From: Trichosphaerium sp. ATCC 40318
Taxonomy: Eukaryota > Protista > Tubulinea
Reading direction: 5' to 3'
Assembly: GCA_038496445.1 (NCBI GenBank)
Contig: JALMLS010000556.1
Span: 1-64,000 of the forward strand
DNA: 64,000 nt
The notes under the pieces were generated by a model. It was not told the origin of the DNA. It was given only the letters and a program-made list of their open reading frames with translations, and did no database searches. The translations under genes and the position numbers were made by a program. Of this stretch, positions 40,896 through 50,900 are shown in pieces (the first letter of the stretch is position 1; each line of letters begins with the position of its first letter).

Positions 40896-43800
40896 TTATT
40901 TCTTGGCTACAGCAGGATGATGTTGTACATAGTTTTTCAAGGAAGGTGTTACAGTATTTAACGCTTCCAAAAAATCATTCATTGACTAAGTAAGAATTAA
41001 CAAATTTTAAGCATAAAACTAACAAACACGTACAACAATCGGAGCTTGTTTGTCGCGCCTGATAGCGTTTATTGCAGCTTCTCGGCATAACCCTTCAATG
41101 TCAGCGCCTGAAAATTCCTAACCAACATAAATAGGAAGGTCTTACTATCCCTAAAGGTACGTACTGACGTCTTGTGTGCTAAAACATCGAAATCAATTTT
41201 ATCATCCAGAGGCATATTCTTCTTTGTTGTATGTACATGTAAGATTGCCTTTCTTCCTTCAAGATCAGGTGCTGGTACTTCTATAAGGTTATCTACACGT
41301 CCTGGACGTAATAAAGCCTCATCCAGCATATCTGGACGGTTTGTAGCAGCAACAACAATAACACCTTCCATAGCCTAATATTATGTTAACATAACAACCA
41401 AGTTTGTATGAAGCACGTACCTCAACGCCATCCATCTCATTCAACAGCGTTGATAACACTCTATTCTGTACACCAGAGTCATGAGTTGAACCTATCAAGA
41501 AGTAAATACACGAACAGTCGCAAGCATGTCCAATCCACACTTGATCTTTTTACAACAATGGAATCAATCTCATCTATAAATACAATAGCTGGTGCTGCCA
41601 TTCTAGCTTTTTGAAAAGTAGTACGAACTATGCGTTCTGCTTCCCCTACATATGAAGAAAATACAGCTGCTCCAGACATTGATATAAAAGTTACTTTTGA
41701 CTTCGCAGCAACAGCCTTAAAAAAACTTCAGAAATCGGCTTACAAAAAGGTGTATACCTTCACCATAGTTGTTTTGCTACATCCAGGAGGTCCATACAAT
41801 AATACACCACGTGATGCTCTAAAGTTGTGTTTTGCATAACGAGCAGCATGTTGGAAGGGGCTAATGATAGCTTTCTGAAGAGCCTATCCAAAGAAATTAC
41901 TATGTGGTTTCTAGTTTAAAGATATGTTTATTCCTTACTTGTTTAACATCCGACAGCCCACCTATATCATCAAATGCTGTTTCAGGAACCTGAGTATGAA
42001 TTCCACGTCTTAAAGAAGGTTGTGTATGTGCTAGAGCATATGTAAAGTCTGCTTCAGTGATTTCAGCATCATTAACTTCAATTCTAACAAAATTAACAGG
42101 TAACCTAGTCAAAGGTACAACACTTACTTTCTATCAATCGCTCTCTTTAATGCTGATTGTGCCGCATTTTGAACGAGATTAACCATATCAGCTGCTACAT
42201 ATCCAACACACTGAGCAGAAATAACATCTAAATCAATTGTCACGCAAAACGAATGAACAGCAGTCAAAAATACTCACCCAGATCTACACTTACTGTAGCT
42301 AATTTCTTGCAATGAATCTTTAATATTTCTTTACGCATAGATGCATTTGGCACTGGTATCATAACTTCTTTATCAAACCTACCTATTAGGAAACCAAAGT
42401 AAGTATCCTACAGCAATATCTTTAAGCTCAAATTACCTGGTCTTCTTATAGCAACGTCCTAATTGCTCATTAGTTATCTCCGACTAATTATAACTATTTA
42501 CTTACCAATAAACTTGGATCATGAGTAGCCGCTAGAATAACAAGTTGCGAGGATTGTTGAGTCTGAGCACCATCAAGCAAGGTAAGAAGTTGACTTACAA
42601 TGCGAAGCATATGTTGATCTTCTTCGCTTCTCTTAGAAGCTACAGCATCCTTAATTCAATTAGAATACAGCTATTGCTATCTAATAACAAAAACACAGTT
42701 TATCAACACGTACAATAGCGTCTAAGAAGAGAATACAATGTCCTTGGTTCTGAGCAACTTCAAATACTTTCCTTAAATATTCTTCACTTTCGCCAAGGTA
42801 TGTGCCGTAGATAGCATTACAATCAATAGTTATAATAGGCGTATTTGTTTTTGATGCTACAGCTTGAACAAGTACTGATTTACCAACTACAAAAAAGTAA
42901 GCTTCCAAGGATATCACAGAACCTCTGTTAGGTGTACCTCCTGAAGGACCAGATATGATAACGCCTGAAATTTGGAACTGTTAAGAAATCACATATGAAT
43001 CTACTTGTACACGTGCCTGAGGGCTTAAAATGTTTGCTTAGTTCTCCTGCATCACTCGAAAATGTTACTACATCACATAGTAATTCTAATTGTTTGTCCA
43101 TCCCTACAATATCCGGAAAGTCTGGCATACAAACCTAAAAGAAATGATATTAACAAGAAGAGTACTAATAAAGTGAAGTAACAAAAAGGTGTACTACCTC
43201 AAACTTGTCGCTTGATTGTTTTTTGCTATTCTCGAAAGCCTGAGGGGGTAGTATTTCTATCACAGTGTTTGATCCGACTCTAACGTATCCACTTGGAAAA
43301 GTAGAAGCGATCTGAATGCAAGTCAGTAACCGTGACAAAAACCAAAGTAAAAGAAGAAACCTTAATTGGATTGCTCTTATCTCCATTTATAATACACCCA
43401 TCAACCAATACAAGCTGTCGTAGCCATGAACGTATCTGTTGTCTCTTTATAATATTTTTAGAGCGAGATCCAGAGCCTTTGGAATCGAGAGGCGACGCTT
43501 AACAGTGAGTTTCAATAAATAATTATTTTGCTGCCAGGAGTGTTTTTTTCACGTGAATGAGCGCTTATGGCGTACTTGTTGGTTGCACTTGTATTTTTTT
43601 TGCCGCTTTTATTGATTTAGGCTCTATGGTACAAATCTCAACGCTGCTACCATAAACATCCTTTGGAGTGGTGGTTTTGGGCTTTGTTGTTGGTTCTTCA
43701 CCTTGTTTAGTGTGTTTGATAAAGGTGTCAATTTGAACATCACTGTTGCTTCGATTGTGCGTAGGCCAAGCCTTTGCAAGCGTTGGTAAACTGAGAATTA

Positions 43801-44041
43801 TCCAACTACGCTCGTACCAAACAGATAAACGTCTACGACAGCTATAAGTACCTACCAGACTTACTACACGCGTATGCGCGTTGTTAAAAAAAAAAAAACA
43901 ACGTACTTCGTCAGTGTTTACTATTGTCGCTTTAACTACATCACCCAACTGGATTCCAAGCCTCTGAAATACTTCTGGACCTATTCGGCATTTACCTGTC
44001 CCTTCATCTTCATACCGCAAAGGTATAAGCTCAAGCGCCAT
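40896..44041 (-). CDS. AFG2B: Double AAA+ ATPase of CDC48 family, SPATA5L1/AFG2B-like
   Basis: N-terminus [20 protein letters not shown]...AWP...VQID resembles SPATA5L1; D1 GPSGVGKS; D2 [32 protein letters not shown]. Confidence 0.8.
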
Positions 44042-44102
44042 ACCTGGCGTAGTAAAGACTTTGATAGAAACTTTAGAGTGTCAAAGCTTTTCCATAGAAT
44101 TA
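44042..44102. promoter_or_regulatory. Putative minimal bidirectional promoter region (AFG2B-like / merT-like)
   Basis: Only 61 bp between divergent ATGs at 44041 and 44103. Confidence 0.45.
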
Positions 44103-44547
44103 ATGACGCAGCCCGTTATCAAATCCGCAATTTCATCTGGTATAGCTGCTTTCACAGCTATTGCAGCAACTTCTTGTTGCTGGGGGCCTGGATTAGCCGC
44201 ATTGGCTGGAGCTAGTGGTACATTTACTTTTATTCGCCTTAAACCGATCATATCGGGTTTCTTATACGTGCCAAGGTCCATTGGGGAACTCGCTTAGTTT
44301 TATTAAACCGTTAACGCCGTATTTCTTTGCTGTTGGTGGAACAGCGTTAGGTTACGCGTGGTATACACATTTAAAACCCAAAACAGACTCTTGCTGTAAA
44401 GCTGGCTCTGCGACGAAAGTACCATTCACACAGAGTCGCGCCTTTCTCGTACTAATGACTGCAACATTCCTTATTTCTATTGGCTACGAATACGCTTACA
44501 AACCATTTTTTTCAACATCTGAAGAATCTTGTGGCTGCGAGCATTGA
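44103..44547 (+). CDS. merT: MerT-like mercury/heavy-metal transport protein, one intron (44218-44275)
   Basis: Spliced ...FTAIAATSCCWGPGLAALAGASGPLGNSLSFIKPLTPYF...LGYAWYTHLKPKTDSCC...KVPFTQSRAFL; three TMs, TM1 Cys pair and loop Cys pair. Confidence 0.8.
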
Positions 44548-44638
44548 TCCACAATTATAATAACTAAAAATCACGTGACAAAATGAAGTTGCAACTACAT
44601 TATAATACACTATTTTCATCTCTTCGAGTTTCGGCTTA

Positions 44639-45475
44639 CTACATAAAACCTTGAATTACAATATCGCAGATTTGTGACTGTGTTAGTTCTTCTAGTTTAA
44701 GCTCATTCTGTTTACAATACTCGCGTACAACTAACTTCTCAAGACTCTTTTGTAATTTCTCCAAGCTATTTGCTGACAGCGAAGGCCATAAGTACTTTAC
44801 ATCACTGTCACTATATCCTTCTGGCCACAGTAAAGACTTGGTAGTCTCTAAATCCTCCCTCAGGGCACGCAGTATAACTACCAATCGATAAAACGAAGCT
44901 TTTGTTGAAGTTGTTGGAAGCCATTGCTGATACAGATTAAATGTGAAAAAATCATCTCCTGTCGCTTTAAGAACTTTGTCACCAATGGTGGGAAGCTGTA
45001 GTAGAGATGATAGTATCAACTTTATGTCACACTCAAGTATTTCTATACCATCATGCTCTGGGTGACGGTACATCTCGTCAATGATTGATGTACGAGTGCA
45101 TGCTATTGTTTGAGGCTTTGTGTCTTTTGGCCAAGTTAACATTAATGAGGCTACCTCTAAGGCTGCTTTTTCTACCGCTTTCCGTCCCTTAAGAGCCGTT
45201 AGAAAGTTTATGAATCGCGTTTGAAAAAGCAAAATGCGTACGTTTCTTCGTTTAACATTCCAAACCGATGTATGTACTACCTTGGCGCGTAGATCACCAG
45301 TACAAGGGTTGAAAAGAAAAATTACACCATTTATTGGCCTTGTAGTTAAATTGCCTTCAATAGTCTTGTGTATGGTAACACGATAAACGCTCGACTCGTC
45401 CAGTACCCATAGATTTTTATCTGATGTCAAATGATTATAGTCATTGGCTACTTGCTTGCAATCACTGTTTGCCAT
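44639..45475 (-). CDS. Stand-alone divergent Prp8 RNase H-like domain (PRP8 domain IV), one in-frame 54-bp intron (45188-45241)
   Basis: VYRVTIHKTIEGNLTTRPINGVIFLFNPCTG...HTSVW...GDKVLKAT...FNLYQQWL...FYRLVVILRAL...WPSLS...LTQSQICDIV is colinear with Prp8 domain IV. Own ATG and stop. Confidence 0.9.
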   Translation of the reverse strand: MANSDCKQVANDYNHLTSDKNLWVLDESSVYRVTIHKTIEGNLTTRPINGVIFLFNPCTGDLRAKVVHTSVWNVKRRNVRILLFQTRFINFLTALKGRKAVEKAALEVASLMLTWPKDTKPQTIACTRTSIIDEMYRHPEHDGIEILECDIKLILSSLLQLPTIGDKVLKATGDDFFTFNLYQQWLPTTSTKASFYRLVVILRALREDLETTKSLLWPEGYSDSDVKYLWPSLSANSLEKLQKSLEKLVVREYCKQNELKLEELTQSQICDIVIQGFM

Positions 45476-45854
45476 CCTATGTGTTGTTTTTGAAGCAAAA
45501 AGACAGAAAAAGAAGGTAGTAGAACTAACTTAAATCTTAGCTAAGTACCAGTTTTGTTCAAAAAAAAGAGTTTTTTTTTCGTGTTTCAAGATACACATAT
45601 TACATATTGCAGCTATTATAACGTTAACTAAAGCTAACTAGTTGTTTGAACCTGTTACACATATGGATAGCGAAGGTGTTGTAGTACATTTCACTGAATT
45701 GTTAGAAGTCGACTTAGGTTAATCAGCTTTCAGAACCTAAACGGTTTGTAACCGGAAAAGTTATACTTCTACATTTGATAGTATTAGTACTGGTGTTTAA
45801 TATAATATTTTCATGTTTGTTGCAGGTTTGGCAGAAGTATCAAATTGCAAGATG

Positions 45855-45932
45855 TTGCAAGAACTAACAAATCTGACAAACTTGCAACAACTAGCAGAAA
45901 TTACAAGATGTCAGTTTTGTTAGTTCTTGCAA
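45855..45932. repeat. 24-bp inverted repeat within a TTGCAA-rich patch
   Basis: ttgcaagaactaacaaatctgaca ... tgtcagttttgttagttcttgcaa (one mismatch). Confidence 0.7.
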
Positions 45933-46565
45933 GAACTGACAGCTTTGATAAAAACTTGCATAACCAGTGCAATGTGAATGTATCACATTCTATAACTCAT
46001 GACAATGTACCTTGCCTGCTGTCCTAATGTACATTAAGGCAAGATGAAAAACCACTGTGTCAAAGTCACAGCATCTACCAAGACGAGCGCAGTATCTCAC
46101 GTAGGTGCGCTCTCATTACTACTCACCCAGGAGCTATAAAAACGAGTACTAATTAATAATTATTTACATGTTAACTTACTAGCACCACGCGCGAATGCTG
46201 GCATATTCAGGCGTACAGAGGAGTATTAAAAGTTGCAAAGTGTTGCAAACTTGAATGATACGAACAATATTGAATAACATAGTGTACCACAACAGTAGGT
46301 GTAATGACCTTGTCTATATTGGTGGTAGTACAGGTGAGGTATCAATGAAGAAGAGCTTTACAGATTTTACAGCACAGTATTAAAGTCTTTAGTTGATAAT
46401 CAAAGTCACAGTATTACGCCAGTTTCTTTTCATCATGACAATATTCTTAGTACGTCAAAGTCATTTCGTTGTGTCAGTTGATCTACATTGATTGAGGTTG
46501 TACACGGAATAAACCTCACTACTCCAGCAGTTTACTCTAACATCAGAACCAGTGAAATACTATGC

Positions 46566-47821
46566 TTATTCTAGCGTAAAAGTAACACTAGTATCATCCA
46601 GACCTTCGGCAATTGTATCTCTATCTAGTTGTATTGAAACAGTATTTGTAAGCAATCCATGATCCACATGACCACCTAAACAGATATGTTATTTATTTAC
46701 AAATTGACACATGCATAAAGTTGTTAGTACCAGCGTCCATATTCCTTAAATGTTTGCATTGTGACTTGAAATCGACAATGTAAAATAGATCTATCTTTGG
46801 CTGACCACGTGATAACAAAAAATAATTATCAGTAACTAGTCCATACGTATACTCAGCATCATCTGCTCTTTGCAACATGTTAAAAGGTCGGCAAGGTAGG
46901 TGCACAATATAACACAAAGGGCGTACTTTATTTTCCATTTTGAAAAGGTCGCCGTTGCTTTAAACGTCACTGACGAAAGTGGCTTCATCTCTCTGAAAAA
47001 ATTGATCTTATTCCCACCTCCTGAAACACGGGCGCTGTAAGCTATATACTTTCTAGAAGATCCTCCCCATCTCATAGAGCAGTCACGATGACTCCAATAA
47101 AATTGTAATCCTCCACCTGTAACGAACTTATTGCAATCTTGTTCTGTTTGTCCGTTTCCTTAATACAACAAACATGTTAATAATTTAGAAGCACAACTGC
47201 AACTTGCTCTACAAGATGAGCGAGTTCAGTTACAATTTCAGTGAACTGTTTCTATTTGTTAAATAAGGCGAAAAACTTTTGTTACAAAAAATCAGCGTAC
47301 CAAGGAGGATGTTTACAGTTTTTGACGCTGATAAGTTTGTAAGCTGAAGGGTAAAAGTAATAGTGTCTCCCAAAGCTAAACGGGATTTGTCTACTGTTAG
47401 TTTTGGCTGTACAGGCGGATGAGCTCTGGTGTAATTGAGAAATCGCTGTTTCCAACATGTTGGGTTTTTAAACGGTCTCTGAGAAGTTAAAACCGGTGCA
47501 GTGTAGTCTACGTTAGTGATCCATCGGCCTCCTTCTCGTTTAAGAAGGAATCCTGGATGAGCAAGTTAGTTAATACAAATTGGTTTAATAACGCTTGCCT
47601 TTGGCTCTCCTGTCTAAGTACATACAGTAACCTCGTCTGTACCATTGTTCAATCGCGATGTAGTTGTTTTTGCCGAAAAAAGCGTTAAACAAGCGCATCC
47701 ACACAGCATCGTTAGAGAAAAGAGCTAAGCAGCGCTTTGAGGTGACAGAAATATTGTACAAGCTCCATAGATCCAAAATAGAAGCAATAGGTATGAACAG
47801 GTCTTGTGGGAGGTGTTCCAT
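46566..47821 (-). CDS. F-box protein with beta-rich C-terminal region
   Basis: MEHLPQDLFIPIASILDLWSLYNISVTSKRCLALFSNDAVW (F-box), WKQRF, ITFTLQLTN; five exons. Confidence 0.75.
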
Positions 47822-47912
47822 GTTTAGTTATTTATACCAACTGTTGAATTAAGCTAGCTTGACATTTTACCAAATTTGAAAAATTGCTCAGTTTAACGTT
47901 TCGACCTTGGTG

Positions 47913-50900
47913 ATGGCATATCACGCGCAAAATGTACTGGCTGTCGCGTTGTATTTGTCAATTGTAGCCTCTGCCGTCGCCAACGTAATTATTCATCCCA
48001 AATACACTACTATAACACAAACACAGCGAAGGAACGAATACAGTGGAGTATTGGAAGTTTTACAGTCTGATAACTTTAACACACAAGAATCATCACTGTA
48101 CCATTTACTTCGCGTCGAGAATCCACACCATCACGCGGGGAAGGTTTTTCACTTAGAAATTAACGATACGATCAATTTATCTCATGGGGATCACATTCGC
48201 GTCAACGCATCGCTAGGCACGTTGAGCGTTAAAATAAATACAGGATATCACGTTGGAAAGCAACATTTACGAGTACATACAATCTTACAGCATTCAAAAC
48301 GCAACACACAACGTACTCAACCAACCCGCAATCAAACCATCCAAGAATACGCGTCAGTTGACGTTTCAAAGGTTGTACAAACATCCATCGCGCTCAACAA
48401 TCGTTTTTGATACCTTGTAGCGTATTCTTGCTATTGGTGCTTCTGCTGACAACTTTACATCACCAACGCATGTGCGATTGGGTCGTATTGCGGCAATAGT
48501 TGTCGACTTTGAGGATACAAATGTGGAGGTACACTAATTCTGGTTTAAAAAAACCATTTTGATTAAATACTGTCCTTAGTGCTCTACGGGAGAGATATCA
48601 AGAACTCTGTGGGGTGGTATAGAATCTGTACAGCACGTTTTCAATAGAAATTCTTTTGGTGAAGCAACTTTTGTTAGAGATACAAGTACGTCTTTTTTGG
48701 TTAGAAAAGTCCGTATAGGCTCACTGAGCGAAATGACTTTGGCCAAATAATAAGTATTCATTAGGTGCAAATGCTCATGTTTATCGTGTTAAGATTGGAT
48801 TAAAACAGGGAAAAGAGAAACTATGCAAACCAGCTTTGTGGTATGCATTTATAAACCGCACTGCATCGGTTCTTTTTTGATTAACTTTACGTTTTTTCAG
48901 GTCTACACTGGCAATCATAGAAGCGGAAAAGAATGGTGTAGAACTACAAAATTATCAGCACCACATGTTTTTTATACCAGGAACATCTCATATTCAAAAT
49001 GTACTCCATTTTAATTGTTTTTTTCAATCTTACCAAGTATTTTAAGATGTGTAAATGGAACGGGCTTGGAAATGTTGGTTGTGGTGTTTATTGCACTACT
49101 TGGATTAGTAGTTGTAAGGATCGTAATGTTATCTCTCATGAGCTTGGACATAATCTCGGACTTCCTCATGCTGCAAGAAATATGTGGTTGAGGGTGCGAT
49201 CAACGCTCTGTTTTATCTATTTTTATAGTTACTCACTGCTTAATCAATAAAGGGTGATGTTATTGAATATGGCGATCCTACAGCAATTATGGGAAATGTT
49301 TGGTCTATTTCCGATAAGACATTTTTCTTCAATGCGCCTCATAGGTAAGTACATTTTCGGATTTGACATTTTGACACATTTTATTCATTGAATATGTATA
49401 GAGTTATGTTGAATTGGCTTAAACACGTTACTACAGTGACTAGCAGTGGAGTATATGAAGTATTTCCTTTTAATAACATGGCATACAAACTTGACAATAA
49501 GATACAAGCACTTCGTATACAGAGGCATGATATCAGTCAAAAAGGTAGATGTAGCTCTTAAGTTGGTGCTAAACTTTTAACTCTCTTTAGTCGTACCTTA
49601 CTATTACTTTTCCTACACTATTGGGGAAGGTTCAATGTACAGTGGCTCATGTGTTGTTCATATGGTATATGATCCTCGTCGCAATACAGAATTTATGAGA
49701 ACAATGGTAGCAGGTACGACACTCATACGTAATGTTATTTCTGTGTTAATTTTTCATGTTAGGAGACGTATTCAAAGACGTTGGTGGAACCTTTTCAGCT
49801 CAACTGATGTCAATTGACAACGAAAAGATGGTGCTTAAATTTGATCATGGATGCAGTGCAAGTACAACTGAAATAGATATCGTACCAAGCAATGAAATAT
49901 CCAAAGTATGTAGTAACTATTATGTATTTTATTTCTACTTACTTTTTACAAACAGAAGTATCACGTAGTATCCAAGGAAAACCAAACTAAAGTATACATA
50001 CATCAATCGGCTTCTCAAAAACCTAGTATATCATTTGATTTCAAAATAACAAACAAAGACACTGCAGTTTGTCCTCAAAAGAATTATACTTTTTCAGCAA
50101 AGGTAAAGCTAAATTTTATCAAAGATTTACTAACTCAAGATGTAGGCGTTAAACAATGCTTTCAATACTACTGTAGGAATAGAATTTGATCCTCCTCATA
50201 TTGTATTAGAAGGGACGCAACAGTGTAGTGTAAAAATGATCATAAGAGCCAAGGAGGTTCGTTAAACTTAAAACAGTTTCCTGCTGAAAAACTAAACAAA
50301 ACAAGGGTGTTCTTGGTGATTTTGCTTCAAAGATTAACATGAAAGCAATGGTAACCGGGAGCTATGGTGCTAATCAAACAACTGAGCTTGATTTAACATT
50401 AGCTAACCCGCCAACGTGTACCAACATAGATAGGTAAGTAACAAAACAAACGCCCATATATTTTAAGTATCACCTTTTTTTAAGTCATTTCATTAGGGTT
50501 ACCCCAACGCTAGATATTGACGACAAACAGTTAATGATGACTGTTGGGCATCATTACACGTTGGTTGGTTCAGTACACAATAATGATCCAAAGTTATGTG
50601 GTACAAGAGCCTTCACAATAACACATAACAGTAAGGGTCTATTCTTCTCTTTTTAAAACTTTATTGACATTACAACCACAGGCGATTGGGTTAAAACACC
50701 TCAAAAAATATCAGTTTTTTCGGAGAAGGTGGAAGAATTCTTTATTGAAGTAACTGCACCTGATAGCTTACCTAAAAACGCTTCTAAAATAATCACGTAT
50801 GAAAATGACATACCAAAGATTTAGACCTAACATCGATTTAGGATTACTCTTAAAGATGATCTCTTAGGCACTGAAATTACATCTAACCTTTCAGTAAATG

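Follow-up and report, generated by a model that had tools for sequence, protein, structure and literature searches.

A transcribed, solitary Prp8 RNase H-like domain gene in Trichosphaerium sp. ATCC 40318

Gene structure and transcripts

The window, a 64-kb stretch of Trichosphaerium sp. ATCC 40318 DNA, carries at 44639..45475 on the minus strand the whole coding region of a solo Prp8 RNase H-like domain gene (solo-RH), as identified from the ORF list, Pfam, a PDB phmmer search and an AlphaFold2 model. A single open frame extends from the ATG at 45475-45473 to a TAA stop codon at 44641-44639 and comprises 278 codons unspliced and 260 codons spliced. Coding exon 1 (45242..45475, minus strand; residues 1-78; placed by contig joint and script) encodes the N-terminal strand, the Asp motif, the beta-finger and further strands. 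Coding exon 2 with the stop codon (44639..45187, minus strand) encodes residues 97-278 of the unspliced frame. The exons are separated by a phase 0 intron of 54 nt (45188..45241, minus strand; GTACGC...CTAAC...AAG). This GT..AG intron, for which a ctaac branch motif had been claimed from the letters alone, contains the motif; it is in frame and stop-free, so that the frame of the unspliced RNA stays open, and it accounts for an 18-residue insertion of the window protein relative to every Prp8 alignment. Searches, alignments and fold prediction were run on the uninterrupted 278-aa frame including these intron-encoded residues.

Similarity to Prp8 begins about 10 residues past the ATG and finishes 4 residues ahead of the stop codon, which bears out the earlier description of an ORF that starts and stops near the domain borders. 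The ATG has A at -3 and G at +4 and is the first in-frame ATG downstream of a stop codon located 18 codons upstream. An AG dinucleotide lies two bases upstream of the ATG. Apparent Prp8 similarity upstream of the ATG was rejected: alignments overran the start by 9-11 codons, the match was trivial, and the stop codon lies 18 codons upstream. An A9-CTC-T8 palindrome at 45555-45590 of the window, some 90 nt before the ATG, falls in a gap in RNA coverage and is a possible promoter or terminator.

For RNA evidence, contigs from four public runs were placed on window positions 43000-48500. X1 and X2 represent one sample and X6 belongs to another study. X1 is cDNA, as shown by a SMART template-switch oligo at 44083 on the contig of the neighbouring gene. 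Contigs of X1, X2 and X6 each skip exactly the 54 nt of the intron, with flanks of 225 nt (X1 side), 175 nt (X2) and 24 nt (X6). The introns of both neighbouring genes are likewise skipped. RNA coverage is restricted to exons and drops to zero in the intergenic intervals 45576-45759 and 46680-48500. The gene is thus transcribed, spliced contigs being present in runs of two studies, and the predicted spliced ORF of about 260 aa holds, with 260 aa after removal of the intron.

At the 3' end, contigs are colinear through the stop codon into the 3' UTR (X1 record 2, 44595-44813; X2 record 7, 44275-44813). Because the stop is read colinearly, the solo-RH protein is 260 aa long and ends 4 residues past the domain; its 3' UTR measures at least 44 nt (44595..44638, minus strand). 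At the 5' end, contigs terminate at 45465 (X1), 45470 (X6) and, at lower depth, 45415 (X2), and no contig of the four runs includes the start codon (45475) or the 5' UTR. The 5' UTR of the neighbouring gene is 20 nt, and short leaders are therefore normal here. The ATG at 45475 is in this way indirectly supported as the true start. RNA evidence against upstream coding exons, which the sequence-only reading had asked for, was obtained in part: X1 and X6 contigs stop no more than 10 nt from the ATG, but the ATG itself is uncovered.

Five contig variants fall in the solo-RH gene (three synonymous, two not), too few for a selection test. At 45395, X1 and X6 contigs carry G instead of C (C>G), which changes codon 27 from GAG (Glu) to GAC (Asp) and the LDESS motif to LDDSS. 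The exchange E27D is conservative and restores the second Asp of the canonical VDDTN motif. The LDESS previously read at this position is hence true of the assembly, with LDDSS in the X1 and X6 contigs. The second non-synonymous variant sits near a contig end. X2 was observed to keep Glu at codon 27 though it is from the same sample as X1; the Glu/Asp difference reflects allelic variation or else the presence of two nearly identical copies.

The flanking region was annotated in the same way. A MerT-like small membrane-protein gene (44083-44600, plus strand; Pfam MerT, E 5e-5, below the gathering score) is convergent with solo-RH, and its 3' end overlaps the solo-RH 3' UTR. It is expressed in all four runs, its transcript start is marked by the SMART oligo at 44083, and its 58-nt intron (approximately 44217-44274) is spliced. 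Next to it lies a gene with a weak CDC48_N-like start (42928-44041, minus strand; E 0.004), whose 49-nt intron (approximately 43312-43360) is skipped in an X6 contig. On the other side, a short element at 46100-46230 recurs in contigs of all four runs with dissimilar flanks on both sides; compared with the transcripts, the window copy seems to contain about 40 additional nt. This is probably a repeated, expressed element. Short repeats, both inverted and direct (ttgcaag / aactaaca motifs), cluster at 45800-46010, a stretch matched by an X1 contig in which 57 nt are swapped for 13 other letters; this is probably a repeat family.

Domain identity, conservation and predicted fold

Among the large proteins of the spliceosome, Prp8 is the most highly conserved, and its RNase H-like (RH) domain with the beta-finger plays a central part in switching from one catalytic step to the other. 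The window protein matches one Pfam family only, PRP8_domainIV (PF12134), at 170 bits (E 7.9e-50), above the curated cut-off of 25 bits. In the PDB phmmer search, residues 11-274 align to human Prp8 1766-2012 (E 1.5e-50), which is the crystallised RNase H-like domain (3E9L, 7PJH). The assignment to domain IV and to no other part of Prp8 was therefore upheld. Identity to canonical domain IV is about 38%, and the best identity to any Prp8 is 39-41%.

Conservation is unevenly distributed, as had been noted for a nearly invariant finger in a strongly diverged remainder. Within the beta-finger (residues 30-50; 45326..45388, minus strand; located by alignments and by model strands 32-37 and 43-48), 19 of 21 residues are identical to canonical Prp8. 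The conserved block around it (residues 23-73; 45257..45409, minus strand), which was delimited by identity counts against canonical Prp8, consists of strand 1, the Asp pair, the beta-finger and the two strands after the finger. Here 35 of 51 residues are identical to canonical (0.69), versus 66 of 208 (0.32) in the remainder (Fisher p 2e-6). In the site table, no position known from yeast finger alleles has changed (human V1788, T1789, H1791, K1792, N1797 and L1798). D1781 (the first metal-site Asp), T1864 and the gate Arg R1865 are also retained. The LDESS motif (45389..45403, minus strand; canonical VDDTN, human D1781/D1782; read from contigs and site table) has Glu for D1782 in the assembly and Asp in X1/X6 contigs, and Q1894 is replaced by Ser. 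Codon 102 (45170..45172, minus strand; site table), the equivalent of human Trp1839, encodes Glu, and V1874 is replaced by Arg. The AAR2/Aar2 interface has W1839 and V1874 as its conserved core, and W1839A abolishes AAR2/Aar2 binding in human and yeast (PMC9629490); both core residues are thus replaced by charged ones in the window protein.

An AlphaFold2 model calculated from a 52-row alignment reached a mean pLDDT of 87.5 and a pTM of 0.85. Confidence is low only in the intron-encoded residues (pLDDT below 50-60) and at the extreme N-terminus. The RNase H-like fold with an inserted beta-hairpin (strands 32-37 and 43-48) was recovered in the model, and Foldseek superimposed it on 3e9l with a TM of 0.91 and an rmsd of 2.4. 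The fold is accordingly predicted to be intact.

For the remainder of Prp8, the 64 kb were searched by tblastn with 14 full-length Prp8 proteins, and only 44654-45448 was found, in line with the earlier statement that no other Prp8 sequence is visible in the window. Additional tblastn queries were 50 domain-flanking fragments (word search) and the remaining hits of the exhaustive search. Again, no other part of Prp8 was detected in the 64-kb window; leftover hits (E 0.2-10) were at the level of a shuffled control, in which 212 queries gave 67 HSPs with E<1. Weak matches at 48050-48121 and 47061-47258 (E 0.2-0.65) were discarded as chance, one of them running through stops. The N-terminal, RT-like, linker/endonuclease-like and Jab1/MPN features of full-length Prp8 are absent from the window chain, the 5' side of which is partly covered by RNA. 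Three defining features of full Prp8 were looked for, namely companion domains, extreme conservation and the Aar2 interface core, and the window protein lacks all three; the window gene is therefore a member of PF12134 but does not qualify as Prp8 if that name means the U5 protein.

Domain IV proteins in other protists

An exhaustive search returned other proteins with domain IV alone in Anaeramoeba flamelloides, Bolivina and metagenomic eukaryotes. Two A. flamelloides assemblies each contain a 265-aa protein (P0058/P0199; KAJ3431121.1 / KAJ6235765.1), encoded by single-exon, isolated genes on Mb-scale contigs (6.2 Mb). P0075 (257 aa) is intronless and was found on eight metagenome contigs of up to 113 kb with unrelated neighbours, and P0099 (260 aa) on a 7.2-kb contig, also with unrelated neighbours. 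P0067 and P0081 are on transcript-sized contigs. P0062, from the foraminiferan Bolivina argentea, is possibly N-terminally incomplete, and P0069 (360 aa) combines domain IV with a ubiquitin domain. In Pfam searches, other Prp8 domains were absent from all of these solo or fused proteins. Two further architectures were recorded: in P0074 (861 aa), domain IV has a degenerate finger and precedes a stretch of about 600 aa containing Cys-rich, LRR-like repeats, and P0194 is a 555-aa RH-Jab1-PROCT protein beginning at the domain.

Between the two Anaeramoeba solos, 7 synonymous and 8 non-synonymous changes were counted (dN/dS 0.27), and their flanks are 6-7% diverged; the Anaeramoeba solo is under purifying selection. 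In A. flamelloides, the solo copy exists alongside a canonical Prp8, which is full-length and contains an intein (PMC10710043). The Anaeramoeba entries are auto-annotated only, as 'pre-mRNA-processing-splicing factor', and no discussion of them was found in the literature.

The skew towards the finger block is shared by all seven other solos (identity 0.43-0.69 in the block vs 0.26-0.46 in the rest), while four divergent full-length Prp8 proteins have no such skew. Counting the window protein, W1839 is lost in 8/8 solos and present in 39/44 other rows; many of these rows are near-identical canonical sequences, so that the site counts are descriptive and do not represent independent samples. 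V1874 is replaced in 8/8 solos, and R1787, V1788, N1797 and R1865 are kept in 8/8. With borders flush with domain IV, the finger skew and the loss of W1839, the window protein fits a provisional group of solo Prp8-RH proteins. Literature searches brought up no account of a Prp8 RH protein standing alone, and one-domain copies of Prp8 RH in protists are seemingly undescribed so far. Standard annotation hides such proteins under the label 'Prp8, partial'.

In domain trees, every solo is placed on a long branch away from the canonical cluster. Three weakly supported solo groups emerged from a careful tree of 30 rows (window protein, P0081 and P0062; P0058 and P0067; P0069, P0075 and P0099). The solos are split off together by a single branch in 12% of bootstrap trees, and a single solo clade was not rejected by the AU test (p 0.37), with long branches throughout. 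The trees are compatible with one ancient origin as well as with several independent births, and long-branch attraction may play a part. Recurrence of the architecture in unrelated protists suggests repeated or ancient invention.

Maintenance, function and comparison with known systems

For an estimate of frame survival without selection, substitutions were simulated on the two exons, kept separate, in 2000 replicates stopped at 60% identity. None of the 2000 replicates retained the 260 codons stop-free, and the real protein is only about 38% identical. No orthologue near enough for dN/dS was obtained from a word-indexed search or from exhaustive phmmer against 1.84 billion representatives. 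Both protein searches found nothing above about 40% identity over the domain; the collections seemingly do not contain this genome, so that the absence of an orthologue is weak evidence. Bolivina P0062 was considered as an orthologue and dismissed: FNPC and WN[VI] motifs are in common, yet identity is 36% and tree support weak. Queries of the ESM Atlas by features and by structure gave nothing useful. The gene does not look like a processed pseudogene or retrocopy, having a spliced intron, an open frame and no A-run after its 3' end. Of the interpretations offered by the sequence-only reading, that of a maintained paralogue has been strengthened: the gene is transcribed and spliced, its frame is too long for neutral decay, conservation is concentrated on the beta-finger block, and the fold is predicted intact. 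The anatomy and maintenance of the solo-RH gene are put forward with high confidence.

Three other accounts of the gene itself were weighed against this. High divergence, with a terminal branch of 1.35-1.43 substitutions per site, and the failure of word and exhaustive searches to find a close orthologue would suit a transcribed relic, i.e. a partial Prp8 duplicate heading to decay, but an intact 260-codon frame against 0/2000 under neutrality, a functional intron, non-uniform conservation and a confidently predicted fold largely refute this reading, which is highly improbable. The alternative interpretation of the sequence-only reading, a piece of a split second Prp8, found no support, given the identity of about 38%, the lost Aar2 contacts, the absence of any other Prp8 piece in 64 kb and, in Anaeramoeba flamelloides, a like-built protein beside full Prp8; the split Prp8 and pseudogene readings are both unlikely. 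More broadly, the RH domain could be one piece of a Prp8 encoded as separate genes, or an assembly artefact excised from Prp8. The RH domain of a sole Prp8 is expected to be near-canonical, whereas the window copy is 38% identical and without W1839; furthermore, cDNA contigs reveal its own stop and 3' UTR, the flanking genes are ordinary and expressed, and a Prp8 remnant was not found in the 64 kb, all of which leaves such an origin an extremely slim chance. Finally, the two exons could be the terminal exons of a larger gene whose upstream, non-Prp8-like exons were missed, with the domain fused to something else. A 5' end outside all contigs, the AG two bases before the ATG and the domain-IV fusions known among relatives would allow for this. 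It is nevertheless very unlikely, as X1 and X6 contigs from different studies end within 10 nt of the ATG (X2 at 45415), coverage is zero at 45576-45759, the ATG context is good with an in-frame stop 18 codons upstream, and the leader of the neighbouring gene is only 20 nt.

In cryo-EM structures, the finger of Prp8 lies against the RNA helices of the catalytic stage. The RH domain is a movable platform bound by Prp18/Slu7 and by the Yju2 C-terminus (PMC8022279). A free RH domain such as that encoded in the window would no longer enter Aar2-dependent U5 snRNP assembly and may still present the finger/sheet face, which in Prp8 contacts catalytic-stage RNA helices and step-specific factors (Prp18/Slu7, Yju2). 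It could then act in trans, as an extra docking site or as a competitor for such ligands. The splicing modulator or decoy suggested by the sequence-only reading is likewise a candidate role. An Aar2 decoy was dismissed, both W1839 and V1874 being replaced in the window protein. That the window gene is an independent, expressed and selected Prp8 paralogue with a docking or competitor function has, taken as a whole, about an even chance of being right, and the proposal that solo-RH works on the spliceosome via its finger face is tentative. Extended to all solo Prp8-RH proteins, this would make each of them a second, detachable beta-finger able to dock on catalytic-stage spliceosomes or to capture factors of the Prp18/Slu7/Yju2 type, and together they would constitute an unrecognised class of trans-acting protist spliceosome regulators; we regard this extension as speculative and rather unlikely.

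Two rival functions were considered. The domain may have been neofunctionalised as an RNA- or protein-binding module outside splicing, with the finger block kept merely as the structural core of the fold. An identity of about 32% outside the block and the loss of the Aar2 contacts and Q1894 are consistent with this, as are relatives in which ubiquitin (P0069) or an LRR-like region (P0074) is joined to the domain, contexts that are not spliceosomal. However, the surface-exposed finger is canonical in 19/21 residues, including positions known only from splicing alleles, and the fold alone does not require finger conservation, because the fold persists in divergent full-length Prp8 proteins whose finger is far more altered. 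A role outside splicing is therefore possible but improbable. A decoy or mimic, serving as bait or sponge for foreign (viral or bacterial) effectors aimed at the spliceosome, appears distinctly unlikely: P0074 does join the domain to an LRR-like region, but an effector is not known, the window gene carries no fused sensor domain, and the finger of P0074 is degenerate, unlike that of the window gene.

A free-standing, selected RH domain with the finger and without the Aar2 contact amounts to a natural experiment on the finger face alone. Should solo-RH turn out to bind spliceosomes or step-specific factors, it would represent a splicing regulator of a new kind and could serve directly as a probe.

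Compared with known systems, the window protein resembles the RH domain of human Prp8/PRPF8 (1755-2016; 3E9L, 7PJH) in its PF12134 match, its predicted fold (TM 0.91), the finger (19/21) and the possession of D1781, T1864 and R1865. It differs in being a separate protein of 260 aa, whereas the human domain occupies approximately residues 1760-2015 of a 2300-aa chain, in its identity of about 38%, and in having Glu at W1839, Arg at V1874, Ser at Q1894 and polymorphic Glu/Asp at D1782. Like the window protein, the Anaeramoeba solos span domain IV from Met to stop, with the finger block retained (35/51) and W1839 lost; unlike it, they are intronless, and they are about 31% identical to it. P0075, P0099, P0067, P0081, P0062 and P0069 share domain IV as the sole Prp8 part, the finger skew and the loss of W1839, and are 27-37% identical to the window protein. 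Full-length Prp8 paralogues and divergent Prp8 proteins (nucleomorph, Mikrocytos and others; P0086, P0083, P0080, P0084) are similarly diverged, with 41-49% identity to the consensus, but all Prp8 domains are kept in them, divergence is even, and their fingers are more altered than those of the solos.
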